From Heterodontus francisci (Eukaryota), in NCBI RefSeq assembly GCF_036365525.1, contig NC_090387.1:76383300-76447299 (forward strand): 64,000 bases of DNA. Direction: 5' to 3'. Made by a program: the position numbers and the translations under genes. Shown one piece after another: positions 5,961 to 31,552 of the stretch (positions are counted from its first letter, which is position 1; the number at the start of each line of letters is the position of its first letter). The notes under the pieces are model-generated. The model saw only the letters and a program-made list of their open reading frames with translations. It was not told the origin of the DNA and ran no database searches.

Positions 5961-5964
5961 AGAG

Positions 5965-6560
5965 CCACTGAACCATAGACAGATTACGGCACAGAAAGAG
6001 GCCATTCAGCCCATCGTCTCCGCGCCGGCTGAAAAAACTAGCCACCCAATCTAATCCCAGCTTCCATCACCTGGTCCGCAGCCTTGCAAGTTATAACACT
6101 TGTGGTGCATGTCTAGGTACCCTTTATATAAGCTGAGCGTTTCTGCCTCCACCACCGTTTCTGGCAGTGAATTCAAGACACCCACCAGCCTCTAGGTGAA
6201 AAGGTTTTCCCTCATGTCCCCTCTAATCCTTCTACTAATCACCTTAAATCTGTGACCCCTGTTAATTGACCCTCTGCCAGGGGAAACAGGTCCTTCCTGT
6301 CTACTCTATCTAGGCCCCTCATAATTTTGTACACCTCAATTAAGTCACCCCCTCAGCCTCCTCTGTTCTAAGAAAACAACTCTAGCCTATCCAATCTTTC
6401 CTCATAGCTGCAACTTTCAAGCCCTGGCAACATTCTTGTAGATCTCTTCTGTACTCTCTACAGAGCAATTATGCCCTTCCTGTAATGTGGTCACCAGAAC
6501 TGTATGCAATACTCCAGCTGTGGCCTAACCAGCATTTTATACAGTTCCAGCATTACATCT
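5965..6560 (-). mobile_element. CR1 LINE 3' fragment
   Basis: Reverse-strand CR1 3' UTR and ORF2 (LEYCIQFWxPHY...RGDLIEVYKIMRG). Confidence 0.85.
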
Positions 6561-6984
6561 CAGCAACTGCTCCAGCCAACAGCTCCCCTATCTCTCCACC
6601 ATTCTCCTAACTGTGTAATGTAGTACATTTCCCGTTTCTTTTCCCACCGTGCACTAAAATTCTCTCTCTAAACATCTCTGCTTCTGCATTCTCTCTCTAT
6701 TTTGATTGTCGTTTAATCCTACCTCTTCGATCAAACCTTTGCTTTCTCCTTCCTAATATACCTTTCTTTCACTGGATGTATTTCTATTTTTGGTTAGGCC
6801 TTTGGAAAACACTTTTGGAAGTCTTTCTACTTTAATGACTTTATATAAATATCACTTGTTGCTTGTGTCTTCCTCTTTATTTTTCCAGTTCTGATGAAGA
6901 GTTAAGACCAAACTATTAACTTATCTGTTCTCTTGGGACAAGTTGATCGACTCATTGAATATTTCCAACATGTTCTATTTTACA

Positions 6985-7830
6985 TTACATAGAATTACAT
7001 GGAGACCATTCGCCCCAACTGGTCTATGCTGCTATTTATGCCCTCGGGGGCGTATTGCCACTCCTTTTCATCTATCCTTATCAGCAAATCCTTTTATTTC
7101 ATTTCCCTTCATATACATATCAAGCTCCACCTTTAAATACATCTATGCCATTCACCTCAACTACTAAATTTTCCACTCATTCGGTAAAAGTTTCTCCTGA
7201 ATTCCTTCTTGGATTTATTTATGATTATCTTATATGTCTGCCGTCTAGTTCTGGACTCCCTCACAAGTTGAAACATTTTTTCTTGGTCTACCCTATCAAA
7301 CACTTTCATTATTTCAAAGACCTCGATCAGGTCCCCCCTCAGCTTTCCATTTTCTAGAGAAAGGAACCTCAGACTTTTCACCCTTTCCTGATAAGTGTAT
7401 CATCTTAGTTCTGGTATTATTCTTGTGGATAGTTTTTGCACGTTTTTCAGTGCCTGTATATCCTATTTTTTAATATGGAAACTGGAAATGTGCACAGTGC
7501 TTCAAGTATGGTCTAATCAAGATTCAATGCAAGTTTAACATAACTTTGCTGCTTTTTAATTCTATCCCTTCAGAAATTAACCCCAATTTTTGGCTTACTT
7601 TTTAATGGCCTTATTAATCTGCATTATCTGCTTTTAGTGATTAATGGATTTGTGCCCCTAAATAATTTCCCCCCTCTACCCCATTTAGACTCTTATTATC
7701 CAAGAAGTATGTGGCCTCCTTACACTTCCTACTAAAATGCACCACCTCACACTTATCTGTATTGAAATTCAATTGCTAATTACATACCCACTCACCAATT
7801 ATTTTACTGTCTTCTTGAATTTTGCCGCAT
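6985..7830 (-). mobile_element. CR1 LINE 3' fragment
   Basis: LRGDLIEVFEIMKVFDRVDQEKMF in ORF 7157-7381; counterpart at 36110-37270. Confidence 0.8.
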
Positions 7831-8475
7831 TCTTTCTCAGTATTAATCATAGAGCTCATTTTGGTGTCATCACAAATTCTGGTTGTGCTACTGACTTCTG
7901 GGCTCTGGCTTCAGATTTCCAGCAGTTTGTTTTCTTTTTTGCGTGGTAAAGATGCTGAGGCGCTGCAAGACCAGGCTGGCAAAGGCCTGCTGTGTTTCTG
8001 TGAAGCCTCAAGAGGCACCCTTGCTCTTTTCATCAGGTCAACCCTGCAACAGGGTGACATCAATTTAGAATTAAATCCAGGCCATTCAGGAATGAAACCA
8101 GGAAACACCTTTTCTCACAAAGACTCATAGAAATCTGGAACCCTCTTCCCAAAAGGCAGTGAATGCTTGGACAATTGGAGTTTTCACGACTCAGCTAGTA
8201 GATTTATATTATTAACGGTATCAAGGGATACAGAAGGAAGGCAGGTAAATGGAGTTGAGGTGCAGATTAGCCATGATCTAAATAAATGACTGACCAGGGT
8301 CCAGAAGCTGAATGTCTATTCCTGTTCTTATGGCATGGCTACAGAAACAATTTAAAACCCTTCCACCCCGTTAATGCCAATGTTCCAAAGAAAAAATGTA
8401 AAGTTTTTACAGGTCTCTCACAGATGTTACATGGGAGAACGGCAGACCCCTGATCGAATTATTGGCTGTACATCT

Positions 8476-9316
8476 TGTTATGATCCTGTAGTTTTTTTCC
8501 CATTAAGAATGTGGTGTGCCGTTAAGGCTGGAAAAGGAGCCATTTTGCTTTAAGGCAACAAGCCCAGAAGCTGAGTCAAAAATGAATTCTCCTTGCCCAG
8601 GGATACAGCCATTCGGAGATGATGATTCAAAGAGTTCTTTCTGTTTGCCCGGGATAGAGCCATTCAGACTGAGCGTTGAGAGATACATTGTTGCCGGGTG
8701 ACGTTTGAAACTAATTGAAATGTTGCCTTTTGAGAGACAGTTCATAGACACAGACAGACAGCTGGCCCAGCAGGAACAGAAGAGATCTCTGATAGTTTAA
8801 ACTGAAGGAGGGAAGTTGGAGTGTGACAATCTTTTATCCATCATATTTTCTGAAGCCAAATTGATTTATTAAAAAGTGTTTGAAAGTTGTTAATTGTTGG
8901 AATCTATCGTGGGAGAAGCAAAGCATCACTTACTGCTGAATTAGACTGCGGACTGTTCTACTGTTGAAGAACCTTTTCTCCCTCCATTGAACGGCTTTGA
9001 GGACTTCAGGCAACCTTGGCAAAATCCACATTGGAAGATTTCACTTCAGAAGGAGCGTAAATATGCAAGGACCATGTTTTATATTTTAAATGTTGTTTAT
9101 ATCTTAGTAGTGTTTTAGAATTTAGTATTCCTCACTAAACAGTTAATTTGTTGATTTAAAGACACCTGGTTTAGCTAGCCTCAATCGGGGGTTAATAGAT
9201 GGTACCATTTGGCTGGGTCTTTAATTTGGAAAGTTTAAAGTGATATGTTAGGTGATCTGTGGAGGATTGAGATTGAATTAACAGCGCGTTTCTCCCATCA
9301 GCGGTCACTCGTAACA
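8476..9316. mobile_element. Solo LTR (same family)
   Basis: TGTTATGA...GTAACA termini, similar to 59091-60069; TSD not preserved. Confidence 0.72.
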
Positions 9317-10311
9317 TATGAATATCTGTAGAACTGATTAACAGTGCTGCAGAATAAACTAGGGTTTGAATTTTCTTGCGCGAACCGCAGCGGTAAATGT
9401 GTGAATCCGTGGAGAAATGTTATTGATGGCGTTTCGTCTGCTCTTCCAGGGTTTCCGTCAATATTTTGCCAAAGTTATTGCGGAAAATCGGTAGAAACCT
9501 CCGCAGAAAATCCACCCAGTTAATTTAACGTATTTACTATCCAATGGCGGCATTGGTCGCATTGCATAAACTCCTGGCATCCGTCTTATTCATCAGCCAT
9601 GTCTACAAATGCAATGGAATTCATATCCAGTTGAGAAAGCGCACTTTTTCTTTCAAATAGCTTTCGATGAATTGAACTATGAAAGTGTTTGGGCAACATC
9701 ATCAGACAATTGATGAGAAACCATTGCATTCATTTTAGTGAGAGTGTTGCATTGAGCACAGCCCGGATCATAGAGCGACTGTCTGCCGATGTCCTCAGTG
9801 TGCAAATTGCATTCTGGAATCGGAAGGTGTGTGCGTGAGGGGTCAGGGTTGCTGCTCGACATCCCAGCATTTAATATGTATCTTTGTGCACTGGTATAAT
9901 TGTGCAGATGAGGAGGGTCATTAAAGAAGTCCTCAGAGGAGGTTTCAAGGAAATCATTGATCCGAGCCCCAAAGCAAGAGTCATTGATCCGGTCCTTAGA
10001 AGAGATCCACTGATCAGGTAACGGAGGTAGTCACTGATCAGATCCCCCCATAAAGGGGTAATTAAACTCCTAAAGGAGATTTAATCATCAACCCCTTTGA
10101 GAAGAGTCATTGACCAAATCTCGAGAGGACAGTGCCCAGAAAATATGTTACTTCTATCACTCAAACAAGTACCCCAGGGCAGCGAATGCTAACAAAAAAA
10201 GTAAAGGAAGCATGGGGCAATGGCATAATATGGGCGATATTGAATTGGCCGTCCCTATACACCATCCCGATTTTTATTTACTTCAATGGAAAGGAAAATC
10301 AGGCGTGGCTA

Positions 10312-10621
10312 ATTCAGTATCAACCAGTTCACAGCATCGTCCAATATTAGAATTACTTCCATGGACTCTAAAGACATCTGGATTTTAACTGGAAACAATT
10401 TCATTTCCCATAATCTTGAAGTCTGTTCCTTCTGTTTGTATCATGATTGAGTCTATTCAATAAAAGATTTTCAGTGCAATGTATACTAAGCAAAGGGATT
10501 ATTTGAGTGCTTGGCAAGATTATGGGAAATGAAATTGTTTCCAGTTAAAATCCAGATGTCTTTAGAGTCCATGGAAATAATTCTAATATTGGACGATGCT
10601 GTGAACTGGTTGATACTGAAT
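10312..10621. repeat. Inverted repeat, 107-bp arms (10312-10418 and 10515-10621) with a 96-bp spacer
   Basis: Arms are reverse complements with one mismatch seen; the structure is absent from copy 2. Confidence 0.95.
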
Positions 10622-10626
10622 CAATC

Positions 10627-10764
10627 AGCTGGCACATGACATGATGGGTTGGATTTTCCACATGCTTCAATAAAAAGCTGGCACATGACATGATGGGTTG
10701 GATTTTCCACATGCTTCAATAAAAAGCTGGCACATGACATGATGGGTTGGATTTTCCACATGCT
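10627..10764 (+). repeat. 49-bp tandem repeat, about 2.8 copies
   Basis: agctggcacatgacatgatgggttggattttccacatgcttcaataaaa starts at 10627, 10676 and 10725; single copy in duplicate 2. Confidence 0.95.
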
Positions 10765-11384
10765 GCCCAGACAGTTAAATATAACAACGGCTGATTCGTA
10801 TTACCAGTTTAGCCCTGAGTGGCTAATTGAAAATCTATCTCACATCCTCCATGATGAAGTTAATACCCTCAATATCGAGTACAATGCAAGCAAACACAAC
10901 TGGGCTCAAGTTTTCTTGCATCTAAAATCTTCATTAGAAATTTATGTTATTTTGAACAGGCCATAGCTTATTCACAGTAAACGCATTGAAACCTTTTTCT
11001 TTGAGGAGAACATGGGTAGATGTGCGATAGTGAAATAAAGCTGATAACAAGGCAGCAGTCCGTGTTACAGTTCACCGAGTATTTATTGCCATTGATTTCA
11101 ATATGGAGAGATATCGATCAGACTGCCTACTCGCTATCGCCGTTTTAAAAGATCTACCCCGGTATTCCTTGCTTTTATTAATTCAATCACAACTGATATC
11201 CCGGTTGAATGCTATCGTTATTAAATGTTTATTTCTGTGATTTTAAGCAGAAGCTCGGCTCCCAAAGTTTGCAAAAAATGTAAATGTTGCGATAAAATCA
11301 AATTTGCTCTAGTATATGTAATACAGCCCGTGGAGGCTGACAGTATAACTATTTTATTTAGTTACCCGATGCTACAGGAAACAT

Positions 11385-11577
11385 GGGGCTAGATCTTGCC
11401 TTTTTACGACAGGGTAAAATGGATGATAGTGAGTCGGCAGCCCGTGTTACATCTCTCCCCATTTTTATTCCCATTGATCTGTACCCCCATTGAAATAAAA
11501 CTCAGGACAGATGTAAAAGGTGATGCCAACGCACTATCATCCATTTTACGCTATCGCACAAAGTAAAAATCTACCCC
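11385..11577. mobile_element. Palindromic MITE-like element
   Basis: ggggctagat...atctacccc termini and a long internal inverted repeat (gtaaaatggatgatagtg / cactatcatccattttac). Related copies near 11015-11160, 16900-17030, 19920-20055, 40725-40917 and 52245-52390. Confidence 0.65.
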
Positions 11578-12811
11578 ACATCGTACGTCGGGCCTTGAAT
11601 ATCAAAATCCGTACAGAAAACCAGTCTTACAATTTTCTTGGAGACAATGTAATCTTCCGCACAGTTTGTCATATTCCAGTCAGTTGTTTCCTGCGTGAGC
11701 TGCTATAGAAGCACATCACTCGGTATTGGTGAAATGAAAAACAAAATACTGCAGAAGTTGGAAATCTGAAATAATAACAGAAATACTCATCAGGTCAGGC
11801 AACATCTGAGGAGGGAGATACTGGCGGTTGATTGAATTACTGATTACGTTGATCAATTACTACTTGCTCCCAGCCCCACCAATCTTCTCCGTCCTTTCTC
11901 AAATGTGCCGATCAGCTTCGCTTCAATGTCCGTAGCACACTTTCTGAGATCTTGCCCAAGTGGAAAACTTGCAAGGGCAAGTCTAGACGGGAAGGGGTAT
12001 AAAGTGCAAAAGAGGCGAGAGCGAATTATTTTTGAATTCTGCCTGATTTGCTTTTCCACCATGAAAATAACAAATCGGACAGAACGAAAAACGGGCCGCC
12101 TATTCGCGATGGCCCGAATCATGCTGCTGTCCCTATGTTAGGAGGATTTCAGACTCAAGAGAGGGGGACATCACAGCCAAACATATTTTAAACTCCACAC
12201 ATGAAATCTTTCCGAAGGAATCACTGATCGGAATCGAGCTTTTGACCTCGCTGATTCCATCCTTCCTGGTCAAGAACTACGGAATAGGAATCCACTAGCC
12301 CTCCACCTGAAAAATTATCTCATTAAGCATGGCCCTGGGATGGAATCTGAGACCTTCCTACTCTGTGCCTACTGCCTTTGACAACAGGGCTATTGGTTAT
12401 TGGTTATGTTTAACCAGAAACAGATTGGGAAATGCATTTGTTTCAACCTTTAACCAGGTTGCCCCCTGGATCATCAGCGCAAATCATTTTGCCGCTAAGC
12501 ACGGTTAAATCAGACTCCAATCCAACTTTCAAGTTATCAATAAGCAAACATCTGGTAGATTGATTCTATTGATCTTTGCGGACACCTTTTCTGGGCACCC
12601 TGGCCTAAACGTAAAATCTGGTTCTGAATATTTTACTGATTTGCTCAATATGGATTGAGCAAGCTGAACAGTCTGGATAACACACAGTGCGGAGGGAGGT
12701 ATCTGCTCTCGCTTGGTGTAGCCAAATCACGAACACTATTTAACAAAAATGTATTTACAATATCACCAAACAAACATCAGAACAATTTTTCCTCATTTGA
12801 ACCAATATGAG

Positions 12812-13255
12812 TGCCAGGCGTGGTTCAATTGATAGTGCTCTGTTTCTATGGTCGATGGTTGTGAATTCAGATCACGCTCCAGGACTAGAATACACAAATC
12901 TACGCTGACACTCCATGCAGTAGTGAGGGCTGCTGCACTGTGTGAGGTGCCGTCTTTCAGATGAAATATTAAACGGAGGCCCTTCTGCTCTCTTAGGTGG
13001 ATGTAACAGATCCCATGGTACAATTTGGGAGAAGAGCAGGGGAGTAATCCCTGGTGTCCTGGCCAATATTTATCCCACCAAACTGATTGCCTCGTCATTA
13101 TCACATTGCTGTTGGTGGGATCTTGCTGCGCGAAAATTGGTTGCCGACTTTCCTACATTACAAAAGTAACTACACTTTAAATGTACTTCATTGGCTGTAA
13201 AGGGCCTTAAAAGTCTCGTGGTTGTGAAAGGCACGATATAAATGTCAATTCTTCA
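12812..13255 (+). mobile_element. DeuSINE (SacSINE1-like)
   Basis: tRNA-like head, Deu-type core gatcccatgg...gaagagcaggggag..ccctggtgtcctggccaatattta, and an aaaggc.ctatataaatg-type tail. Related copies near 1700-2160, 2740-3120, 3540-3750, 32300-32730, 42165-42600, 50420-50860 and 54590-54960 (-). Confidence 0.7.
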
Positions 13256-13662
13256 CAAAATTGTTTTGAAACAATAATTGGTCCTATCACCATGCGGTTG
13301 ACTATTACTCCCGTTAAATAACTGGGGAAAATTACCTCTGGTTGCTTTTTTGAGTGAAATCTTAAACGGCTTCTTTTAAAGCACTTCCACTATTTTCCTC
13401 GAACATGGAAATCCTCCAAACAACTTCGCTACAGAAGAGATCAGAGTCCTTTGTGAGGAGATATAAAGGACAAAACGTTGGAACAGCTATTGCCTCAAAT
13501 AATATGTGATTACTTACAATGTGTAAATTGTGGACAAATGTCCATCTTCAAAGAACATTCATTATCATCTCCTAACGGTTAACGCGACCTTATTTACTGG
13601 TTTACAATAATGATTTGATCTGTAAAGCGGCGATGCACCCTGGTATTAAACGTAATTCCCAC

Positions 13663-13768
13663 CTTTGACAGTTAAATTAATTCCTAACGATGACTGTCAG
13701 CACCATTGCCATCAATACACCCACTGACCGCCGGGACAACAAAAAAAGGGTAGCGACGTTAGCAGCAC
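13663..13768 (-). pseudogene. IgSF pseudogene B', TM exon (copy 1)
   Basis: GAANVATLFLLSRRSVGVLMAMVLTVIVRN*; the acceptor is mutated ag to cg relative to copy 2. Confidence 0.6.
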
Positions 13769-14077
13769 CGACAAACACAGATTAACGGAGATTTAAGATC
13801 GACGAGCATTAATATCAATGAAACCAGCAAGAAACCCCAGGAATACACGAAGTCAGAACGAATCGTGTAAAGGCCATTTAATATAAATACAAATAATGTT
13901 TTAAAAAATATTCAAATAAAATGGCAACAAAAAAAAGGTTCACAATCTGACCAATAAATCCTCAACGTAATAAACGAATACATTAACAACAAATGCTAAC
14001 ACGTGTTCACAAACGTGTGCTGGTATTAAGAAAAACGATAAACGAGCGAACGTTTCTGAAAAATGAATTGACGATAC

Positions 14078-14375
14078 CTTCAAAGTTGTAATTGACATTG
14101 GCTGGAGTCTGAAGAGAGACATGAGACACTTGGCAGCTGCATGTCGCGCCACTGTGGGATGGCGCCGTATCTTTTAAAATTCTGCAAATCTCATACAGTC
14201 CCACTCTGGTTTGCTGTTTAGTAGTATTGATCCCGGTTACACTTTTAATATTTTTCTTATCCCAAGTCACATTGAGATCCTCAGGGTAAAACTTAGCTGT
14301 TTTACAGGAGAATCAGAGAAGTGGATGGACGGAATTCAGACTCAACTAAGTCGATCCTCAGAGGAGTGAGCGGAA
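14078..14375 (-). pseudogene. IgSF pseudogene B', C1 exon with 2-nt frameshift (duplicate copy 1)
   Basis: Acceptor cttttccacccaag|TT and donor GAAG|gtatcg, 298 nt (not a multiple of 3). VPLTPLRIDLVESEFRPSTSLILL / CKTAKFYPEDLNVTW...CSCQVSHVSLQTPANVNYNFE; a TG is missing at CTG(TG)TAAA. Confidence 0.9.
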
Positions 14376-14704
14376 CTTGGGTGGAAAAGAAAATTAGTTT
14401 ATGTTGAATAATTTAGTCTATAATTTAGAACACGAGTTTAGGACGGGTCCCTTTAACATCGTGTTTCATTGGAACATTTTTAATTCTTCCTTTCCAAATA
14501 TTATTAAACATGAAGCTAGAAATTGCATGGAATCCGTAACGAAGAAAGGAGAAATTGCAGTATTCGGAAGACTCCTTGAGCCATCGATCGTAGAAGGAGG
14601 TCATAGGTACATCGTGCCTTTGTCGGCTCTTTGAAAGAGTTATGCAATTAATCCCACTTCCTGCTCTTTCTCTATAGCCTATTTCCTATTCAAGTACATA
14701 TCCT

Positions 14705-15425
14705 GATTCTGGCACGGTTCCATTAGATTGGAAAATAGCAATTTATTCAAAAAGCGAGGCAAATAGAAAGCATGAAACGACGGGCCAGTTAGCTTAACAT
14801 CAGTCCTCGGGAAAATGTCAGATGCTATTATTAAAGACGTTATAGTAGGGCACATAGAAAAAAATCAAGGTAATCAGGCAGAGTCAACATGGTTTTGTGA
14901 AAGAGAAGTAATTTTTAACCAATTTATTGGAGTTCTTTGAAGAACTAACATGTGCTGCAGATAAAGGTGGATGTACTGAACTTATTTTCCAAAAGGCATT
15001 TGATAAGGTGCCACATCAAAGGTTATTGCGGTAAATAAAGGCTGATGGTGGAGGGAATAATATACTGGCATGGATCGAAGATTGGTGAGGTAACAGGAAA
15101 CAAAGAGTAGGCAGTAATCGGTCATTTCTGGTCAGCAAGATGCAACTAGCGATGTGCCACAGGATCGGTGCTGGGCCTCAACTTTTTGCAATTTATATAA
15201 ATGACTTGATGAAGGGACCAAAGGTATGGTTGCAAAATTTGCTGATGACACAAAGATAGATAGGAAAGTAAGTCATGAAGTGGTATAAGGTGGCGACAAG
15301 TGGATAGGTTACGTGATCGGGCAAAGGTCTGGCAAATGGAGCATAATGTGGGAAAATGTGAAACTGTCCATTTTAGCAGGAAGAATAAAAAAGAAGCTTT
15401 TATCTAAATGGTGAGAGATTGCAGA
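14705..15425 (+). mobile_element. CR1 RT fragment truncated at the duplication breakpoint
   Basis: FQKAFDKVPHQRLL, VPQGSVLG and KFADDTK motifs. Confidence 0.85.
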
Positions 15426-15909
15426 AGTTGGATGATTGGCACTTTCTTAGACTTCAAGGGATTCCTTTTGATTTGACCATGCAAGCTTAATTTTAAGAGC
15501 CATCACAAGTTACCAGGGCAATTTTTTGATTGCCATTGGTTGATATTGCGGCATAAACATCTCACATGTTTGAAATCCAGAACATACGGACCCGAGTACA
15601 TTTTCAACATACCGCCCGCGTAAATCTGGCTTTGCAAACCCTGCTCTCGACTGGTTCTAAAATAGGCCGACGACCAATTCCGCCAGTATATTGCCTCATT
15701 GTTGAAGGTGAAAATCAATACTTCCCCCACCCCTCCCGAAACACACACACACACACACACACGAGATGCGTGTGATGTTCCAGAACGTTACTCCGTAGTC
15801 TAGCTTCAATAAATAAAAACAATTATAGAAACACATTTAATGGTGTATAATCGAATACCCTGGAGCGACACCCATAAATACCCCACTTCTTCGGACTGTG
15901 TTTAGATTC

Positions 15910-16032
15910 TCAGCTTCTCTCTTTCGTTATCACGTTTACTTCAGCATACACTGCGCTCTTGTCTTGTTTAGGTTTTGATGTTTTCTTGGAATCAGCGTAA
16001 GTCAACTTGTTATCACCGCCTCTTTGTTTAGT
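15910..16032 (-). CDS. IgSF receptor gene A, terminal cytoplasmic exon with two tyrosine motifs
   Basis: Acceptor attacttttgcag|ACT, phase 0; TKQRGGDNKLTYADSKKTSKPKQDKSAVYAEVNVITKERS then TGA (15910-15912). LTYADS and AVYAEV are ITIM/ITSM-like. Confidence 0.8.
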   Translation of the reverse strand, partial: TKQRGGDNKLTYADSKKTSKPKQDKSAVYAEVNVITKERS

Positions 16033-17729
16033 CTGCAAAAGTAATATTTCGTATCACCCGTTAGTCTGTTGCCCACTCATTGCTTGAGGTAATCGAGGTT
16101 TGAAAAAGGCCGTAGTGAAATTTCTTCTCATCAATTACCAACTTCAGATTGTAACCGGATTTTGTACTGGTTTATTTCTCTCCGGTTTCTCCCCTCTCTG
16201 CAAACGATTCCTGTTGCGTCACAATTTCAGGCCCTCCCCTAAATCTTATTGGTATTCCCCTTTAACCTTCATATAAAATTAGTTCTGATGTAAAAGGTCA
16301 CAGACCTGTAACGTTATCTCTGTTTCTCTCTCCATAGGTGTTGCCAAATCTGATGAGTATTTCCAACACTTCCTGTGTTTTTTTCCAGATTTCCAGCATC
16401 CGCAGTATTTTGCTTTTATAAAATTAGTTCTCCTGCTGATGCAGCCCATATAAGGGAGCAGGTTGATACTTCAATTAAAATAGAAACATGAATTTCATAC
16501 TGATCTGTTCATGATATTTGGAATGATGAAATTATAAAGCACCGTTTTTAAGGCCCTGTTGTTTGAGCGTCGACAGCCAATGCGACCTTACCCCAAGGTC
16601 AAATATGATGAACCTTGGCTGAGATCAGCTGACACAACACAGTGGTAGATTAAACCTGGGATCTTTGTAATTCCTGCAGCCCAGTGTCGTAACCTGTCGT
16701 AATATGAGCTGTACCTGGGCATACACCGTACTCTGCTCCTTCTGTCAGTGTTTCGCATTGTTTCTGGTCCTGGTTTCGACTGTTGCGTAGGGCAATTCTT
16801 GTTTCGTCTGTAAAATAGATCTTTGGAAGTCTTACCAGGCAAGTTTCCTATTTTTTAATTTATAATCGTTATTACAGCCAGACACGAAAACGAAATAGGG
16901 CTGATTTTGACTGACTACTGTCGTGTCATACGGATGAAGAGTCCGCAACCCGTTTTACATCTCTCATGATTTCTATTTCCAACCAAGTCAGTGGGAGAGA
17001 TGCCGATTCGCCAGCACTCATTATATGCTGTCCCCTAAAGTCTGTACTACCTCGGTAAATTCTGTATAGCTTGTTAGAGTTGACTCTGTTATCACAGAGT
17101 GTTGATTTTGTGTAGAAATGGTTTGGATATCATTCGCGCGCCAATCGCTCGCCCTACCTGGGGATAGACGGTGTGCTCTATCTCATGTCTACGTTTGGGG
17201 TGTCCTTCGTCATCTCTCATGTTTAGAGTAGCGTAGGCGGCAATTTACTCATTTGATCCTTGTCTAACCTGCCTAAATAAGATATAAAATACTGATAGCC
17301 GAGAGTCTAATACAGCAGCCAGCTATCATTAATTGGAAATGAGTCTGAAAGTGTCAATATGGAGACAGTAACCGATAAAATTAGGGCTTAATTGCATTTT
17401 GTCCACTCTCAATGATTTCATTCAATATCTCATCTATAGGGTGAGTAATAATGTTCCAAATATGAAATCCGGAGAGCTCAAATCTTCTTAATCCTCAGTC
17501 ATCTCAGCCTATTGAAAGATCTTCCAGGCCGAGCCTGAAAATTGTCCTCGCTCCTCTTCCAGCCATTTTCACCCCGAGCAGGAAATCAGCCGCTGAGGCC
17601 CTGGCCATTCACCTCGTCTCCCCGCTGTTGCCCAACCCAGGAGTTCGGGGTGCAGGTCAATTCGGTATCGAGAGCCCTGTCCCAGCTAACACACCAGATT
17701 TGGAGACGGCACCAGGGACGTTCTGAATC

Positions 17730-17880
17730 TAAAAGCAAAATACTGCGGTTGCTGGAAATCTGAAATAAAAACAGCAAATAATGCAAATACTTTGTGGAGA
17801 GAGAAGCAGAGTTAACCTTTCAGGTCTATGACCTCTCATGGAAGGTCACAGGTCTGAAACGTTGGCTCTGTTTCTCTGAC
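17730..17880 (+). repeat. Short interspersed repeat (possibly Penelope-derived)
   Basis: aaaagcaaaatactgcgg.tgctggaaatctgaaataaaaacag...tgtggagagaga recurs at about 11735, 16280 (-), 41065, 46775 (-) and 50950 (-). Confidence 0.6.
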
Positions 17881-18004
17881 CTTCCTAATCTGTCTGGTTG
17901 TCCTACACAATGTCTCAATTAAGCAACTGGGGATCTCCGATTTTTAAAATAATTTGAATTATGAAAGAGGAAGTTGTTATAAGTATATGTACAATAAATA
18001 CAAA

Positions 18005-18595
18005 TATTTATCTTGGCCTTAACATCAAGACATCGTGTACAAAAACAAGGAATTTATGCAAAACCTTTCTAAATCACTGGTGAGGCCTCAATTCCAGGCG
18101 CCACTCTCTAGGAAAGTTGTTAAGGCTTTCGAGAGCATGCAAAGGAGATTTACTGAAATGGTATCAGGGTTGAGCGACTTCATTTACGTTGAGGAAACTA
18201 GAGAATCTACGATCGTCCTCCTTAGAACAGAGAACGTTATGGGGAGATTTAATAGAGGTGTTCAAAATTATGAGAGGTTTTGGTAGAGTAAATAAGGAGA
18301 AATTGATTTCACTGGTGGTTGGGTTGGTATCCAGGGGACAGATATTTAAAATAATTGACAAATAATCAGGGAAGACAAGGATATTTTTAATGCAGCCGCT
18401 GTTGTGATCTGGAATGCACTGCCTGAAAGGGTGGTGGAAGCAGATTCAATAGAAACTTTCGAAAAGGATATATACTTGCAATGAAAAAAAAAATGTAAGG
18501 TGAAGAGTCGTCGAGTGGGACGAATTGGATAGTTATTTCAAAGAACCGGCACAGGCACCCTGGCCTCCTTCCTTGCTGTAGGATTCTATGATTCT
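18005..18595 (+). mobile_element. CR1 LINE 3' fragment (old)
   Basis: YKNKEFMQNLSKSLVRPQ...MQRRFTEMV with an (attctatg)n-type tail. Confidence 0.75.
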
Positions 18596-18668
18596 ATTAA
18601 ATTACATTATTATCTTCCAGACTATACACCCGCCTCTTTTTGGAAGATGAAAAACATTGCCACCTTAC

Positions 18669-18712
18669 CGGCTCTTCAGCCTGACTCGCCTCCTCAGAAT
18701 TATTCTTATTGC
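18669..18712 (-). CDS. IgSF receptor gene A, first cytoplasmic exon
   Basis: Acceptor tctctttccctcag|GC and donor CCG|gtaagg, 44 nt, phase 1/0, compatible with both neighbours; encodes GNKNNSEEASQAEEP. Confidence 0.75.
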
Positions 18713-18952
18713 CTGAGGGAAAGAGACGTCCACAATCAATAGCTTAATCAGTGTATAAGCAAAACAACTTCATACTTACGATGATAAACACAGGTACTGT
18801 GTAAAGTAAGGAAACTTGAAGGTACAGATCTCTCCGAAGACGTTAAGCAGTATCAGGCAATACAATGCAGCATGCTGTGCATTACCTTCTCCTACCCCGC
18901 AGTGGCGTTGGACCTAACCGAGTAGACATTGCCTTTATGCGATAGTGCAAAA

Positions 18953-19913
18953 CAAGGCTGTCCAACCTTTTCGCGTGACGCGGGGGGTGGGGGGGGGGGG
19001 GGGGGGGGGCGGGGGGTGGGGGGGGTGGTGGCGGGGGATGCGGGGAAGGTGGCACAATACAATTTGTCTGACATAGGGCTGGTGAGACAATTTCGGAAAG
19101 ATAAAGGCATTAAAAACATCTTACCATTAAAACAACAAATGTGCAATTTTGAGAGGACGCTTTAAATAAGATTAATTTATTAACTTCTTTTCTTACCACT
19201 ATGTTAGACACTGATTTATTGAGATACCTAACTTATTTTTTTGCTTGCCCAAGTAGTCAATATTTGCTTGCACACCTGTTGTAGTGATGTGAAGTATTCT
19301 GGATAGATGTCTATCTGTCAGTAATGATCTTGATCACTCTCCCTCTCTATCCCTGTCTCTCTCTCCCTGTGTTATCCTGCTCTGTGTTGTTCCCCACCCC
19401 CGTGTTGTCCTTGCTGTCTGTGTCCCCCTCACTGTCCCTCTCTCTCTTTGTCACCTCTCCTTCCCCTTTTCTCTCTCACAGTTACAGAGAGTGGGAAAGC
19501 TCAGCAGAGCAACTTGTGGTTGGTCAACTTTTAAAAAAATCTCAAGCTTGTTTCACAGTTGACAGGTGCTGGGAGCTGGAACAGCTGTTTCCGAGCTTCG
19601 GACGAATTTAGGGTTTTCCGGTGGGTGCCGACCTTTTTTTATAAAGCGCGCCGGAAAACGCTAAATCAGTCCGAAGTTCGAAAACTGCTGTTCCGCCTGT
19701 CAGCACCTGTCAGCTGTGAAACCGACGCTACTTTTTTGTCAAAAAGCCGGTCTGGAAGAAGAAGCCAATGAGAAATTGCTCATCTCCGAAATTACCAGTC
19801 ACGGACACCTTGCGAGGATGAGGAACGGCCCGGTACAGTTTCCATCCGTGGGCGGGAAGGAAACCTTTGGCAGGCCGGATCCTGGCTCACGGGCGGTATG
19901 TTGGATAACCATG
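18953..19913. mobile_element. Non-autonomous hAT (Charlie-like) DNA transposon in an intron of gene A
   Basis: Imperfect TIRs caaggctgtccaac / gttggataaccatg; 8-bp TSD gtgcaaaa / gtgtaaaa; Charlie-type subterminal ggccggat..ggc.c.cgggc motif. Confidence 0.8.
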
Positions 19914-20397
19914 GTGTAAAATATATAATAGAGTTGGCAGACCATTTTACACCTCGAAATTACAATGCAAATAAAATTCGAACGACGTGTAAAATAGGTT
20001 GCCCCTGCCAATTCGATATCATCCATTTTACAGTATCGCAGAAAGCCAAAATCTACTTTAAGCGTTGACACTTCAAGATCTGGACCCGCAATGATAGCAA
20101 AAAAAAAATGCAAAACGGTAAGGATTCGGGGTGTTGCAAAATAGAAATGAAAAAAGTCAAATGAATAGTTGGAATAGGAAGGTGAAATAATTGCATTTCA
20201 AAATCCAGTATACATGGTCATATTCAACTACCAATGATAGAAAGCTCCAGTGTTATCAACTTCATTCTTTAAAGATGCAGTAAGGTGCTCTTTATTCTTC
20301 TACAATGAATGACGTTTCACCTTCCCTTTCTGTATTGTAAAAATACAACTGGGCCTTTGAAAATAAAAGTATTCGGCGGAATAAGAAATATTCTTAC

Positions 20398-20502
20398 CAT
20401 CTGATGCCTTTAATTTGAGTCTGGTCAAAGTTGTTATTAATAGTAAAATTGCCAGTATGCCCCCTGCACGCCCAAAAATCGGCAGAAATTTATAATCAGC
20501 AC
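20398..20502 (-). CDS. IgSF receptor gene A, transmembrane exon
   Basis: Acceptor aatcctgcag|GT and donor GATG|gtaaga, 105 nt, phase 1/1. GADYKFLPIFGRAGGILAILLLITTLTRLKLKASD is a hydrophobic helix followed by basic stop-transfer residues. Confidence 0.85.
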
Positions 20503-21532
20503 CTGCAGGATTAACAGATAATTGAAATAAGAAACCGTAGAGCACAGTGACATATATACACCGAGAATCGTGGGTGAGGCACGAGAGGACGAGTCGCAAA
20601 GGTGTCTCTCGGGATAACGGCGTCTTCTGTCAGTGGGGCTAAACCCCTATTATTTCTAAGGGCAGTATATTATAATATGTACCAAACAATGGCAACTGTA
20701 ATCCAGTAATGCAATTCATGGAGAAAGTAAATCCTTTCCATAAAGGCACAGGAAGCTTCTCTATGCACGTGAGGGGTTTTTTTTAAGAGTAAAGGGAGTT
20801 ATACTTTTTTTTTTACCTCGCAGTGCGACACCACACTGATCCGCAACGGCTGCAAAGGTGGCAAAGTCTTCCATTCTTGATCGCTGACATGCCTCAGCAG
20901 TGTTATTAGAGCATACCTACTGCAACTTTTAGTAGGTAACAAGTAACTTGCATTTATACAGCGCCTTTAACATAGCAAAACGTCAAAAGGCACTTCACAG
21001 AGAATCACCAAACAAAGTTTTAAACCGAGCCACATAAGGGGATATGAGGACATGTGGAGACAGAGTTCAAGGAGCGTCTTAAAGGAGAGCGAAATGGAGA
21101 GCCGGAGAGGTCGGGAATCTTAAAGGTTAGGGTGTAGACAACTGATGGCACGGTGCGCAGAGATAAAATGAATATAATGATATTTCCATCTATTCAATTT
21201 AAATTCACGGGATGTAAAGTGACTCTGGTAGAACCGATCCATTTTATGTGTAGTTTCATTTTATTTGGCTAGAATTTGACGAGGAATAATCTTTCAAGTT
21301 TGGAGCAGTTGCACATCAACCTTCCGTTTCAGATTGCTTCAGGGAAATACTCTCCTTCCTTCACCTACTTGAATATTTTATTTCGTATCCAATAATGTGG
21401 CATTGAGGGTAAATACAGTTCACATTCACTCCGTATCCTCGAGTTTGAACAGTGTTCCAGCTACATGTCTAATCAGTAATTACAGATTGAAGTAATTATT
21501 ACGCTTTGCGCTGCATATGTTTTCAAACCTAC

Positions 21533-21829
21533 CTCGATTGGCGGTGTAGCTGACATTGGCAGGTACCAGAAGAGAGACATGAGATGCCAGACAGGTGTAA
21601 ACGACTTTATTCGGGGCAGGTTGTACTTCTTCCAAAAAACTGCAAACATCATAAAGTCCCTCCGCGTTCCTGCTTTTCACAGTTTCGTTTCCGCTCAGAA
21701 TTTCGACACCATCTCTTAACCAGGAAATTTCTAAATGCTCCGGGTAAAAGGAAGCCGTTTTACACACGAGTTTCAGAGGAGTCGCTGAAATTCCTTCAAC
21801 AGGAACTATTTTCAGGGGGGTCGGGGGAA
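21533..21829 (-). CDS. IgSF receptor gene A, C1-set Ig domain exon
   Basis: Acceptor ttttcttctctgttaaag|TT and donor CGAG|gtaggt, 297 nt, phase 1/1. VPPTPLKI...LVCKTASFYPEHLEISWLRDG...GLYDVCS...YTCLASHVSL matches the C1 motifs CxxxxFYP..I.W and YxCxxxHxS. Confidence 0.93.
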
Positions 21830-22206
21830 CTTTAACAGAGAAGAAAAAAATTGTTTTAATTTAGAAGAACACATTCTCATTTTCTACCCTTCTTATGCTG
21901 TCACCCCGCAACGGTTACAATAGTTATCGGTGCTATCGTTCTTTAAACTTTATGTTTGCACTTATTTGATAAATTGTTGTGCCGCACACAGCAAAAAGAC
22001 GGGATGTATTGCAAACGATGCATAAAGAGGATGACTCTCCAAGGGCTGGTTACAATCAGGGAAGCAGACGCCGCTGCTCTGAATGGAAGTATCAGATCCT
22101 GGCGTGGGATTGGGGTTAGCAGTAATGATCCCAAGTGAGATTCCTGTCGGAATATATCGGAGTGAGCGCAAACTAGTTCACACGAACAGCGGAATCGTCT
22201 CTCCTT

Positions 22207-22471
22207 ATTTTTATTTATTTATTTATTTATTTATTTTACTTTTTATTTAGCGATACAGCACTGAAACAGGCCCTTCGGCCCACCGAATCTGTGCCGGTCA
22301 ACAACCACCCATTTATACTAACTCCAGTAATCTCATATTCCCTACCACCTACCTAAACTAGGGGAAATTTACAATGGCCAATTTACCTATCACCTGCAAG
22401 TCTTTGGGCTGTGGGAGGAAACTGGAGCACCCGGCGAAAACCCACGTGATCACAGGGAGAACTTGCAAACT
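22207..22471 (-). mobile_element. HE1-like V-SINE, 5'-truncated, with (TAAA)n tail
   Basis: Reverse complement of the 3' two-thirds of the 43036 element. Confidence 0.85.
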
Positions 22472-24324
22472 GTAAGATTCATTGCTGTATTAAACATTTC
22501 GTGTGTCTATTTCAAAGCTGGTCGTTTTTCGAATATTTCATATATTTCAAAACATATTTTCTTTTAGCACATAATATTGGGAAGATGATATGTGGAATCA
22601 AAATATCTCTGATGTCGGTATTGAATCCCGACAGGATGTTGTCATATGTATAGATTGGAATCCGTGTATTACAACATTTCAGCGTCTGTGCTGAAGATTT
22701 CAGATCGTGCAGCTTTCACCTAAGGAACTTTCTCTAGAGGGTGAACCGAGGGCTGAAACATTTTTCACCGCATGAAAGGGTTGTATTGGTAATTATATAT
22801 TAATGTGTAGAACATAACATCCATACAGAAGAGGGAAACAGAATGGGAAATCCTAACTCAAAGTGAAGGTATTATATAATTCCAGGGTTTCCGCCTTTCT
22901 CCAAGTTCATTCGTTCTGCTTAACACGTTTTGCCTGGAGAAGATTCTGCTGTTAACAGTCCTACATTTACCATTTACTAATTTACGAACCTGTGTCCGCT
23001 CGATATACAGTCACTGTTTAGCTGGAAGGACAGGCCCTTTATTCGTTTTGCATTGTTTTGCCAATTTATTACAATCTCCTTAATATATTTTTCTTTACAC
23101 ATTTACTTTTCCGATGTTGTAGCAATAGCAAATTATTAAATTAGGGGCATTATAACCTGCAAAATTACATTTGCCTTTATTCCCAACAAAGGCTCAGAAT
23201 TCCTCCATTCTTTTATCATGGATCTGCTTTACAGATAATATGCAATGCAGTAGAATTTCAGTGGAGAAGGAGGGCGGTGTTCTTTTGATCTATTGCCGTA
23301 ATTTCCGTGTGGGATTTGGGGAGAGCAAATGGAAATCATGAATTACAAAGACGGGAGACCAGGCGTTTAGACAAATGTTTCGTGATATCATTCCAGTATC
23401 TGAGGGGTTGAGACTGGAAAAAAGAAAGTCTAATTGGCGTACGACAGAGGTTCAAATATGGGCATTGTGTACCTTTACTATTTTGCAAGCTGGAGGACTT
23501 GGGGTGGAATCCAGTATTCAGGGCAAGATCAACACCTCCTTCTGACTGGGTTGTAGGATTCATTTGTAAAAGGTGTTTGGTATCTCAAACAAGTTATCAC
23601 TCGACACAAGTGCACAGCATAAATTGCGGACATAGGAACAGGAGTAGGCAATTCAGTCCCTCGAGCTTGCTGTGCCACTCATTTAGATTATAGTTGATTA
23701 ACACATTAACTCCATTTTCCTGACATAATTCTTTTCCCTTGCTACCCATACCAAACAAAAACCTATCCACATCAAATATCGGAGAAGTCGGTAAAGAAAT
23801 ATTAGATCGGCAGTTTTGAGCAGTGAAAAGGTCTCTGGTGCGAGAAATATTCACGGCGGTAGCAGGAATGTTTTCACTTGAGTTTGTAACGAGTCACCTT
23901 TTTGGGGCGGATTAGATGGTCTTTAATGTTGTATAGAAGACTTGACCTAGCAGGTGTTAAAATTGTTCCCATTGTTGCACATTGGTACCGTTATTTTGGT
24001 GAGAAGGAACCTGGCTATCTTATCCTATTGATTAATTTCAAACTAAGGTTTGAATTTTTTTTCCATTATCTTGGCTTAATAACAATTGTACCTGCACCAA
24101 AAGCACTTTGGAATGTTATGAGGACAATGAGCAGGTGAAATTGGTCTCTCGGCAGTAGCGAAAAACTGGCGATCGCGAATCAGCGGTTTGCACACCGGGG
24201 TCAATGGAAAAGAAAATCCCGTGATATGTAAAACGAATTTGTTGGCAGCCAGTCTTCGTCCAGTGAAATTACATATATTGCACACAGCTGAAAAAGTCCC
24301 ACTCCCTGGTACAATGACACTTAC

Positions 24325-24627
24325 CGTACACAGTAAGCTGCGAACCACTTCCATCTCCAATGGATCCGTTAGATTTTACATGACAGTAATACATTCCGGA
24401 GTCTGCAACACTCGCATTCAGAACATCAAATGAACTACTTCCTTTTTTTACATTAAATCGCTTTCTGCTGTCTGGCTCCAGAAACGATCCCTCGCCGCGT
24501 TTCCACCAATAAACATCGAGATTATATTGAAATAGCGGAAATGTACAGAACATGGAAACATTCCCACCTCTGGCAACCTTCAAGAATTTCAGAAACTGTT
24601 CCACTTTGTTCAAAGTTACTTCAGTGG
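24325..24627 (-). CDS. IgSF receptor gene A, V-type Ig domain exon with germline-joined J-like G strand
   Basis: Acceptor ttttctaatag|CC and donor TACG|gtaagt, 303 nt, phase 1/1. Translates ATEVTLNKVEQ...MFCTF...VYWWKRG...DSGMYYC...GDGSGSQLTVY with the canonical V-set Cys, Trp and DxGxYxC. The ORF extends upstream to an in-frame ATG at 24670. Confidence 0.93.
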
Positions 24628-24704
24628 CTATTAGAAAATAAACAAGAACGGTGGTAACAGTTGTACACATCAGATAAACGTCCCAAAATGCATCACTCCG
24701 CACT

Positions 24705-25148
24705 TGGATGCGTTAAATTCCATTTGTCAATCCCTTGCCCACTTTCTCTGTTGATCTATATCCTGTTGTAACCTTAGACAACCTTCTTCACTTTCCACTG
24801 TACCACCAATTTTGATGTCGCCTGCAAACTTACTAATCATGCCCCTTACATTCACATCCAAGTCCTTAATATATATGACAAACAACAAAGGGCCTAGCAC
24901 CGATCCCTGCGGCACACCACTGGTCACCAGCCTCCCCAATCTGAAAAACAACCCTCCACTACCACCCTCTGCCTCCTATCACCAAGCCAATTTTGTATCC
25001 AATTGGCTAGTTCACCATGGAGCCTATGCGTTTGAACCTTCTGGACCAGTCTACCATGTGGGACCTTGTCAAAGGCCTTGCTAAAATACATGTAGACAAC
25101 ATCCATCGCCCTGCCCTCATCAATCCTCTTGGTCACCTCCTCGAAAAA
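24705..25148 (-). mobile_element. CR1 RT fragment immediately upstream of the V exon
   Basis: FSKAFDKVPHGRL, TSGVPQGSVLGPLLFVIYI and SKFAGD motifs. Confidence 0.9.
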
Positions 25149-25259
25149 GTAAATTTGCAAAAATACATTGCAAAACATTTCGAAACAGTTCAAATTTCAC
25201 GTTTCAGGAAGTACAATTGAGATCAGATTTATTCGATACAGAAAACATGAAGTGCCTCA

Positions 25260-29559: not shown

Positions 29560-30552
29560 GCATATAAAGGGGGCCTGATGTGCTTTATTTCGACTTTCAG
29601 AAGGCTTTCGACAAAGTTACACAGAAGTGATTAGCATGTAAAATTAAAGCTCATGGGAGTGGGGGTAGTATATGGCGATGGATAGAATTGATAATTGGTT
29701 TGCAGCCAGTAATTGAGTGGGCACATATATGGCAGATGCAGTATAATGTGGATAAATGTGAGGTTATTCACTTTGGTAGCAAAGAAGGAAGGCAGATTAT
29801 TATCTGAAGGGCTATAAATTGAGAGAGGGGAATGTGCAACGAGACCTGGGTGTTTTCGTCGACAAGGCGCTGCTGGTAAGCATGCAGGTGTAACAGGCGG
29901 TAAAAAAGGCAAATGGTATGTTGGCCTTCATGGTGAGAGGATTCGAAGCAGGGATGTCTTTCTGCATTTATACAGGGGCTTGGTGAGGCCACAACTGGAA
30001 TATTGTGTGCAGTTTTGGTCTCCTTATCTGAGGAAGGATGTTCTTGCTATAGAGGGAGTGCAGCGAAGGTATACCAGACTGATTCCTGGGATGGCGGGAC
30101 TGACGTATGAGGACAGATTGAGTTGGTTAGGATTATATCCGCTGGAGTTCAGAAGAGTGAGAGGGGATCTCATAGAAACCTATAACATTCTAAGAGGACT
30201 TGACAGGGTAGATGCAGGAAGGATGTTCCCGATGGTGGGGGAGTCCAGAACCAGGAGTCATAGTCTAAGGATACGGGATAAACCTTTCAGGACTGAGATG
30301 AGGAGAAAATACTTCACCCAGAGAGCGGTGGGCCTGTGGAATTCGTTACCACAGAAAGCAGTTGAGGCCAAAACAATGCATGTTTTCAAGAAGGAGTTAG
30401 ATATAGCTCTTGGGGTGAAAGGGATGAAAGGATATGGGGGGGAAAGGGGAGCAGGTTACTGAGTTTGATGATCAGCCATGATCATACTGAAAGGCAGAGC
30501 AGGCTCGAAGGGCCGAATGGTCTACTGCTGCTCCTATTTTTATGCATCTATG
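29560..30552 (+). mobile_element. CR1 LINE 3' part with internal deletion
   Basis: ORF 29980-30462 VRPQLEYCVQFWSPYLRKD..., 3' hairpin. Confidence 0.92.
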
Positions 30553-31029
30553 AGGAACAAAGTTCCCATCAACAAAAAAAAAAATATATATATATAAACG
30601 GGGCTGGGGTATAATGGTCACCTTTAAAAAACGGGTTAATTACAGAGTAAAGCTTCCCTTACACTGTCCCCATCAAACAAAACAGAAGAGGAAAAAAGGC
30701 GCAGGGGTAGGTGGGACCGGTGTCGGAGGGATGGTGGATGCCTGTCAGTGATTGTTCACTGTCTGCGACTGACAGCGGACTGCCTGGGTGGAGTGAGCAC
30801 CGATTGGCACTTCGCGGTGCAGACACGCTGGAATCGGCCGCCCCTGCTGTTTTTGCCCTTTAAGGAAGTGGGGGGGGGGGGGAATGGGAGCGAGGAGCAT
30901 TGAACCATAAGTGGCAAACCATGAATGGACACCCGGGGACCATGAGCAGGGAATGGGGAGCGGCGAGCCATGAGCGGGCAGTGACAAATTATGAGTGGCA
31001 AACAAATATTGGGAAGCGGGTCACCATGT

Positions 31030-31260
31030 GACACAGAGAAGGAACAGGGACAGAGAGGGGTGAGACAGAGAGGCGGAGAGAGACACACAGAGAGAGGGAG
31101 AGACAGGGAGCGGGGGAGAGAGACACGCAAAGGGAGTGCGGTGAGAGAGAAACAGAAAGAGGACGGGGAGAGAGACACAGAGATGAAGAGGGAGAGTGAC
31201 AGAGAGAAGGAGAGTCGCAGAGAAGGGGGAAGAGACAGACACGGAGAGGGGAGAGTGGGG
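31030..31260. repeat. GA-rich low-complexity tract
   Basis: Degenerate (GA)n; shorter in copy 1 at 1150-1270. Confidence 0.85.
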
Positions 31261-31552
31261 ACATCCATCTGGAATGCGTCCCATTGCTACACCAAGTGTG
31301 TGGGCAAAGATTGACTACTAAATCAAGCAAAAACAATGCCAGGTATGTCAATAAATCGGTGTTCAACATAGTGACGAGAAAGTAAATCAATAAATTAGTC
31401 TCATCATTTAAAGCTTTTTCACAAAAATGCATAGTAATCCATAGTAAGACAAATATTTAATGCCTCTATCATTTCGAAATTTTCTCAGTGGCATCCTATA
31501 TAGGAATAAAATTGTAATGTGGCCTACCACGCGAAAAGGTTGGACACCTCCG
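31255..31552 (-). mobile_element. Terminal fragment of the same hAT family, opposite orientation
   Basis: Reverse-complement similarity to 18953-19310, ending cacgcgaaaaggttggacacctccg. Confidence 0.7.

Follow-up and report, generated by a model that had tools for sequence, protein, structure and literature searches.

A probably decaying copy of a V-C1 receptor gene in the horn shark belongs to a SIRP-like family of cartilaginous fish

The mammalian signal-regulatory proteins (SIRPalpha/SHPS-1, SIRPbeta, and SIRPgamma) combine a V domain with a J-like G strand, C1-set domains, and a single transmembrane (TM) segment, and they exist as paired forms, inhibitory ones with immunoreceptor tyrosine-based inhibitory motifs (ITIMs) and activating ones with a basic TM residue and a short tail (PMC12975943). 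They are the closest named kind of a receptor family of cartilaginous fish, which shares these domain features and likewise has paired inhibitory and activating forms. The V-C1 topology of SIRPs has already been discussed as related to the precursor of antigen receptors (PMC2785349). Here we describe a member of the shark family in a 64,000-nucleotide stretch of the Heterodontus francisci genome (contig NC_090387.1, positions 76,383,300 to 76,447,299 of the forward strand), hereafter called the window. An earlier note, made from the sequence alone, had joined five minus-strand exons at 15910-24670 into an open, hidden receptor gene of one V and one C1 domain. We consider this locus, hereafter the window copy, to be a recently inactivated and decaying copy (pseudogene) of the chondrichthyan V-C1 receptor family, with a probability of roughly 60%.

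Other described systems share parts of this architecture. UrIg and UrIg2, non-rearranging Ig-like genes of elasmobranchs, also have a single-exon VJ domain and C1-set domains (PDB 9dmx). UrIg consists of VJ and three C1-type domains and is secreted, and UrIg2 consists of VJ and 9-11 C domains (PMC12227049), whereas the window copy and its family have one C1 domain, a TM segment, and an ITIM-type tail. UrIg2 is the top match of the C1 exon in the PDB by summed score and the second for the family profile, but this score adds up three weak matches to C domains; because of this and the different architecture, membership in UrIg was rejected. Immunoglobulin (Ig) light chains and T cell receptor (TCR) chains share the V-J-C1 order and the canonical J motif, and the family profile aligns over the entire V-C1 of lambda-type chains. 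Unlike these chains, the window copy has V and J in one exon with no rearrangement needed, has its own TM segment and tyrosine-motif tail, and belongs to a multigene germline family. PRARP and NKp30 are TM proteins with a non-rearranging VJ-type V domain, and both are listed with SIRP among the joined-VJ members of the Ig superfamily (PMC11599192). NKp30 has a V domain only, unlike the V plus C1 of the window copy. PRARP has the architecture V-C2-TM, whereas the second domain of the window copy is C1-set. The V domains of the B7 family are not known to have a canonical J motif. Only automatic names point to an identity as B7-H6 (NCR3LG1), a B7 member that pairs with NKp30, and the canonical J motif of the shark family argues against it.

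Exon boundaries were checked by reading the DNA, each exon was translated singly, and homology searches used single exons or database proteins. By direct reading, AG acceptors preceded by pyrimidine tracts and GT donors flank the five exons of the earlier note, with phases of 1/1/1/0. Their lengths (346, 297, 105, 44, and 123 nt) add up to 915 nt, or 304 codons and a stop counted from ATG 24670, and the arithmetic of the earlier note is right. The V(J) exon, on the minus strand like all exons of the gene, measures 346 nt from that ATG and 303 nt (24325-24627) from the conserved acceptor. It is phase 1 in and phase 1 out (AG 24629-24628, GT 24324-24323) and encodes (A)TEVTLNKVEQF...YYCHVKSNGSIGDGSGSQLTVY. 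The V framework, the CDR3-like (complementarity-determining region 3) stretch, and a J-like GxGxxLxV motif are contiguous in this single, germline-joined exon with a terminal splice donor. It terminates in IGDGSGSQLTV, where the family consensus reads GNGTGSxLxV. Together with a Pfam V-set match of 6.4e-10, this bears out the V domain with a J-like end that had been proposed. The exon keeps 20 of the 21 family-conserved columns.

The C1-set exon (21533-21829, 297 nt, phase 1-1) encodes (V)PPTPLKIVPVEGISATPLKLVCKTASFYPEHLEISWLRDG...VYTCLASHVSLLVPANVSYTANR. It starts with the linker (V)PPTPLKIVPV..., which corresponds to the VPPTPLKI linker of the family, and continues into one C1-set domain. 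Pfam assigns C1-set at 3e-9 as against C2-set_2 at 0.016, and the exon contains the C1 hallmarks named by Hatherley et al. (PMC2785349): FYP, exactly 13 residues between Cys-B and Trp-C, and YTCLASH. All but one of its 25 conserved columns are kept, the sole change being Ser to Cys in YDVCSF. Pfam, the C1 hallmarks, and profile matches in the PDB settle the predicted folds of both exons. About 1 kb downstream of this single C1 exon lies the exon for the stalk and TM segment (20398-20502, 105 nt, phase 1-1), which encodes (G)ADYKFLPIFGRAGGILAILLLITTLTRLKLKASD. The first cytoplasmic exon (18669-18712, 44 nt, phase 1 to 0) encodes (G)NKNNSEEASQAEEP and aligns with GSKKDSAEAGQAEEQ of the H. francisci model XP_067906043 (P0152, 380 aa).

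A HMMER search with the C1 exon against 1.84 billion representatives gave 604 matches at E<=1e-3 and 180 at E<=1e-10. The top single-domain matches are proteins of 200-420 aa with a leader, a V domain, a C1 domain, a TM segment, and a tyrosine-rich tail. Every match whose source was looked up comes from a shark, ray, or chimaera: H. francisci, Scyliorhinus, Heptranchias, Mustelus, Chiloscyllium, Hemiscyllium, Mobula, Narcine, Hypanus, Pristis, Amblyraja, Leucoraja, Hemitrygon, and the chimaera Callorhinchus. These matches and the sources looked up among them support the proposal of a cartilaginous-fish family of non-rearranging V(J)-C1-TM receptors with a tyrosine-motif tail. The family is real and large, occurs only in Chondrichthyes within these searches, and is already annotated automatically. 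The names given by NCBI are inconsistent. The commonest is SIRPalpha/SHPS-1-like ('tyrosine-protein phosphatase non-receptor type substrate 1-like'), and others are signal-regulatory protein beta-1-like, NCR3 ligand 1-like (NCR3LG1-like), tapasin-related protein-like, immunoglobulin lambda-1 light chain-like, and T cell receptor beta chain-like. Besides P0152, examples are XP_038662024 of S. canicula and XP_042196416 of C. milii. With paralogs present in RefSeq as SIRPalpha-like, SIRPbeta-like, NCR3LG1-like, and tapasin-related-like proteins, the words 'hidden' and novel are not supported. The earlier note had also held that clear 1:1 orthology to a characterised gene would take away the novelty; clear close kinship was found to automatically annotated genes but not to characterised ones. 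No description of a chondrichthyan SIRP-like family was found in the literature that could be reached.

Homologous genes have a separate leader exon followed by seven coding exons. When P0152 is laid on the window exon by exon, order and phases are the same, and two extra cytoplasmic exons appear between the fourth and fifth exons of the earlier model. The tblastn E-values of P0152 against the window (1.6e-54 for V and 1.1e-46 for C1) place the homology of this exon set with annotated shark proteins far beyond chance; the identities are 87% for V, from residue 19 on, and 79% for C1. Closer still is P0163, an H. francisci model automatically named 'tapasin-related protein-like', with 87% identity in V and 89-91% in C1. 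In per-domain maximum-likelihood trees, the window exon is sister to P0163 (support 100/98 for V and 95/92 for C1) inside a clade of horn-shark sequences only. As judged from these trees, the window copy is the sister of the gene encoding P0163. The nearest proteins are all horn-shark models on one chromosome of 99.65 Mb. Of the seven H. francisci models that the search yielded, none matches the window copy exactly (best 87-91%), which leaves this copy without a protein model among those found.

An alignment of 23 family members shows conserved blocks in the J motif (GNGTGSxLxV), the linker (VPPTPLKI), the C1 domain (CKTAAFYPE...W and YTCLVSH), the TM segment (GCAGGG), and the tail modules VAYxxLNL, ERTVYAQTKQ, LTYAALDL, and TEYAEI. 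The long-tail forms of the family have a GCAGG TM motif and ITIMs, and the short-tail forms have Arg in the TM segment. The tail of SIRPalpha is built of repeated xTYAxLxL ... xEYAx[IV] modules, and the layout of the shark tail resembles it. Mammalian SIRPalpha is V-C1-C1, whereas one V and one C1 domain are the norm for nearly all members of the shark family, as the earlier note had observed for the single C1 exon of the window. The Amblyraja radiata protein P0008 is V-C1-C1 through a recent, near-identical tandem copy of its C1 exon and is an independent recreation of the SIRPalpha-like three-domain layout. In the PDB, SIRPalpha (2wng_A) is the best match of the family profile other than Ig and UrIg, with V and C1 in one stretch (5.5e-27). 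It scores 97.9 bits including a second stretch for the extra C1 domain, compared with 85-92 bits for lambda-type chains and 117.9 bits over three stretches for UrIg2. Since lambda-type chains score about as high as SIRPalpha and UrIg2 scores higher, the ectodomain alone cannot order these relations.

The window copy agrees with the chondrichthyan SIRP-like models in exon order, phases, J motif, VPPTPLKI linker, TM motif, and tail modules. It differs from them by a leader exon that is not there, two nonsense codons, a 15-nt deletion in an ITIM, and an Arg in place of the common Cys of the TM segment. The nonsense codons lie in the two conserved cytoplasmic exons that the earlier model had passed over. 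The second cytoplasmic exon (17158-17268, 111 nt, phase 0-0, AG/GT intact) reads VRQGSNE-stop-IAAYATLNMRDDEGHPKRRHEIEHTVYPQ, with an in-frame TAA at 17247-17245 at the position of the Gln of its homologs; it matches P0152 by tblastn at 2.3e-14 and 76% identity. The third (16715-16807, 93 nt, phase 0-0, AG/GT intact) reads TKQELPYATVETRTRNNAKH-stop-QKEQSTVYAQ, with an in-frame TGA at 16747-16745 where homologs have Arg; it matches P0152 at 3.5e-11 and is 90% identical to P0163. The last coding exon (15910-16032, 123 nt with the stop TGA 15912-15910) encodes TKQRGGDNKLTYA/DSKKTSKPKQDKSAVYAEVNVITKERS and has lost 15 nt at the junction 15994/15993. The deletion takes ALQLA from the family ITIM LTYAALQL and leaves YAEV. 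LTYAALQLADSKK thereby gives LTYADSKK without the Leu at Y+3, and AVYAEV is the only tyrosine module left in this exon. A possible polyadenylation signal, a match to the motif ATTAAA, follows about 70 nt past the stop (15836-15841, minus strand). With two stop-bearing exons and the deletion, the long-tail ITIM and ITSM (immunoreceptor tyrosine-based switch motif) modules are not intact in the window copy. The TM Arg is encoded by CGT 20470-20468 in a column where 14 of 21 aligned homologs have Cys (IFGCAGG). As all AG and GT sites are intact, the stop-bearing middle exons should be spliced in, and the five-exon frame is 'open' because these two exons were skipped.

The start ATG 24670-24668 and the 'signal peptide' MCTTVTTVLVYFLI of the earlier model (24628-24670, minus strand) correspond to a polypyrimidine tract and AG, which form the 3′ end of the leader intron in paralogs. 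This ATG is upstream of the conserved phase-1 acceptor AG 24629-24628, and P0164, another H. francisci model, reads the homologous intron tail as VIFLYLMYATVT. The tblastn alignment of P0152 to the window begins at residue 19 (24628) and leaves residues 1-18, the leader exon MSVRASVQYMALLGMVWP, unmatched. The family leader exon was not found within the window: ungapped BLOSUM62 scans with three family leaders on both strands and eight on the minus strand gave chance-level scores. One candidate, MSVSLVAHLYLLL at 28982, was rejected for having no donor site. The phase-1 acceptor for the leader splice is present, and the leader exon could lie beyond the window. Just upstream of the V exon lies a truncated reverse-transcriptase fragment of a long interspersed nuclear element (LINE; 24730-25193, minus strand), with Pfam RVT_1 matches of 2.5e-6 and 8.6e-4 that are both under the gathering score. 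Its reading runs on to ~24680, ~50 nt from the V acceptor, where it is cut in mid-domain with the 3′ part of the element missing. A break of this kind suggests that a deletion, with its breakpoint on this side, took away the 5′ end of the gene.

We read the locus as a decaying copy because the leader is missing from the window, two exons with good splice sites carry nonsense codons, an ITIM is deleted, and no protein model was found for it; its 304-aa frame most likely arises from joining only those exons that happen to be stop-free. What had been called an open gene has two conserved exons with stops, no leader exon found in the window, and one ITIM deleted; the proposed TM segment and tyrosine-motif tail stand as far as the TM exon and the tail modules of the family are concerned, but the tail is damaged, the deletion having taken the Leu at Y+3. 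The gene plan of the family starts with a leader exon and a V exon into which the J motif is built; a single C1-set exon and a TM exon follow, and the tail is encoded by three to four short cytoplasmic exons of phase 0 that bear ITIM/ITSM-type motifs (VAYxxLNL, TVYAQ, LTYAALxL, and xxYAE[VI]). By analogy with SIRPalpha, the V domain of intact members would bind a ligand, and their phosphorylated tyrosines would recruit SH2 phosphatases and damp the cell. In our reading, the window copy and the P0163 gene are sisters within a tandem cluster undergoing birth-and-death turnover. The window copy has kept its V, C1, TM, and first cytoplasmic exons intact, but it has probably lost the leader exon, and presumably the promoter, where the truncated LINE abuts V. 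It also has nonsense codons in both middle cytoplasmic exons, a deletion of the last-exon ITIM, and an Arg for the common TM Cys.

Several observations weigh against decay. Neither stops nor frameshifts interrupt the ectodomain and TM exons, and 45 of 48 family-conserved columns are kept in them, which is no worse than the annotated members themselves, where 0-10 of the 48 are changed. The first cytoplasmic exon is likewise without a lesion. The three tail lesions are all confined to the final 327 of ~1076 coding nt (post-hoc p ~0.03, or ~0.08 for just the two that follow the first stop). Such clustering is as compatible with selection on a truncated product as with recent death. In addition, P0164 (isoform X3) joins its first and last cytoplasmic exons exactly as the earlier note did, and an exon-skipped, in-frame mRNA of this kind is possible for the window copy as well, going by that predicted isoform. 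Two of the arguments for decay, the missing protein model and the failure to find a leader within 39 kb, are negative evidence.

The alternative that survives best, although we consider it unlikely, is that the window copy is a working activating-type member similar to SIRPbeta, with V, C1, a TM segment bearing an outer Arg, and a tyrosine-free tail of ~31 aa. A basic residue in the outer TM segment together with a short tail is the classical mark of activating partners such as SIRPbeta (PMC12975943). In such a receptor, TAA 17247-17245 would end the protein 7 residues past the first cytoplasmic exon, the Arg would pair with an acidic adaptor of the FcR-gamma or DAP12 type that carries an immunoreceptor tyrosine-based activation motif, and the downstream ITIM exons would be relics decaying freely, as in activating KIRs. 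The Arg is indeed in the same alignment column as that of the catshark protein P0167 (IIGRVGG), whose tail also stops just past the first cytoplasmic exon (...EEPVG-stop, compared with ...EEPVRQGSNE-stop in the window copy). An outer-TM Arg with a short tail of 5-37 aa is also found in P0116, P0123, P0088, P0061, and P0054. The lesions are all at or downstream of the first stop, with the V, C1, and TM exons intact and conserved. However, no leader exon or promoter region was found in the window, and no protein model of the window copy is among those found. The stop lies two introns ahead of the last exon with intact splice sites, so that the transcript would be expected to undergo nonsense-mediated decay, barring early polyadenylation. 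The change from Cys to Arg is a single T-to-C substitution that could be neutral drift. On the same evidence, it is a doubtful proposition that the copy records a switch from an inhibitory to an activating receptor, with a T-to-C change creating the TM Arg, a nonsense codon cutting the tail, and the stranded ITIM exons rotting.

It is improbable that the 304-aa product of the earlier note is real, that is, a protein started at ATG 24670 with both stop-bearing exons skipped, the TM Arg, and a tail with LTYADS and AVYAEV. Its five exons are in frame with canonical sites, the skipped exons are both phase 0-0 so that skipping keeps the frame, the same first-to-last join of cytoplasmic exons occurs in P0164, and MCTTVTTVLVYFLIA is hydrophobic enough to pass for a short signal peptide. 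But the ATG lies in sequence homologous to the leader intron, and the hydrophobicity is that of a translated polypyrimidine tract. The skipped exons retain good splice sites, the tail ITIM has lost its Leu at Y+3, YAEV has Ala at position -2, and no promoter region was found in the window.

A relic of the pre-RAG antigen-receptor ancestor, as a lineage apart from SIRPs and nearer to Ig and TCR than any known non-rearranging gene, is very improbable: lambda-type Ig chains (85-92 bits) and UrIg2 do reach scores with the family profile similar to that of SIRPalpha (98 bits, its extra C1 included), the best single-domain V matches in the PDB are TCR alpha and shark VNAR, and the J motif is canonical, but bit scores cannot order splits so old, the tail layout of paired xxYAxLxL ... 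xEYAx[IV] modules resembles that of SIRPalpha, the role of ancestor candidate has already been given to UrIg and UrIg2 on linkage evidence (PMC12227049), and this one damaged copy has no bearing on the question.

The surroundings of the gene contain further family remains. An orphan C1 exon relic of a paralog lies downstream of the gene at 14088-14306 on the minus strand (tblastn 7e-19, 41% identity), with a stop just ahead of FSCKT. A dead paralog occupies 43718-48429 on the minus strand; its V exon (47900-48221) has the J motif FGNGTGSELLV and several in-frame stops, its C1 exon (44150-44404) also has stops, and a plus-strand LINE open reading frame (ORF) of 234 aa (45525-46229) lies between the two. 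Self-BLAST shows a segmental duplication of ~15 kb, in which 235-15426 and 30161-44868 are colinear, on the same strand, and 80-93% identical. The two copies flank the gene on both sides, with a dead family C1 exon at the high-coordinate end of each; the orphan relic lies within the first copy and is the duplicate of 44150-44404. The copies break off inside a LINE (14897-15426 matches 44336-44868), and the duplication thus ends ~500 nt from the last exon of the gene. These relics and the duplication mark a tandem cluster in birth-and-death turnover. Within the introns of the gene, we note a long C-rich low-complexity tract between the TM and first cytoplasmic exons (18955-19045, minus strand), whose C runs translate as poly-Pro. 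The V-C1 intron contains a dispersed repeat (22242-22471) that is ~82% identical to 43115-43368 and 36612-36851 in a self-comparison of the window.

The family models show additional variation. A third TM type, with Arg close to the outer end and Asp close to the inner one (R...GIIVDHV), goes with a short tail and is found in P0006, P0153, P0168, P0029, P0043, P0049, P0076, P0142, P0169, and P0177. By analogy, two charged TM residues recall a TCR-type assembly with signalling partners. In the H. francisci model P0162 (isoform X2), the TM exon is left out and C1 runs directly into the first cytoplasmic exon, so that a soluble form is predicted; P0166, P0168, and P0169 terminate in another C-terminal exon (GK[ED]RL.ISA...). 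From these predicted isoforms, exon choice seems to give the family both membrane and secreted variants. Finally, P0001 and P0161, from ENA contigs of 1090 and 860 bp, are a read-through ORF whose V exon is 70% identical to that of the window. This ORF has the IGDGSGSQLTV motif in common with the window and comparable intron-start residues (VCGKYHC versus VYGKCHC), and its source is probably another shark.

Taken as a whole, the window copy is a new but damaged member of a family known through automatic annotation, and the evidence does not support seeing in it a gene that is intact, hidden, and ancestor-like. Nor is the ancestor-like architecture a new insight, as the link between V-C1 SIRPs and antigen receptors is an established idea (PMC2785349) and UrIg and UrIg2 are the current candidates (PMC12227049). 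The locus itself adds little, since it is damaged and the same genome holds better, intact members at other places. What it offers is one data point on birth-and-death turnover, possibly also one on the derivation of activating partners from inhibitory ones, and a lesson that an 'open' frame built from stop-free exons can hide broken conserved exons. The family matters more, as non-rearranging VJ-C1 genes of cartilaginous fish are central to the debate on the origin of Ig and TCR (UrIg and UrIg2, 2023-2025). Sharks, rays, and chimaeras share a large family of this type that is membrane-bound and comes in paired inhibitory and activating forms, and it deserves a proper description in place of the inconsistent automatic names that are all it has now. 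With a lower probability than decay, the window copy may be, or may have been, an activating-type receptor with stranded, decaying ITIM exons. If the reading of an inhibitory-to-activating switch is true, no older SIRP-like system than this family would be known, and the antigen receptors would have no closer membrane-anchored VJ-C1 kin.

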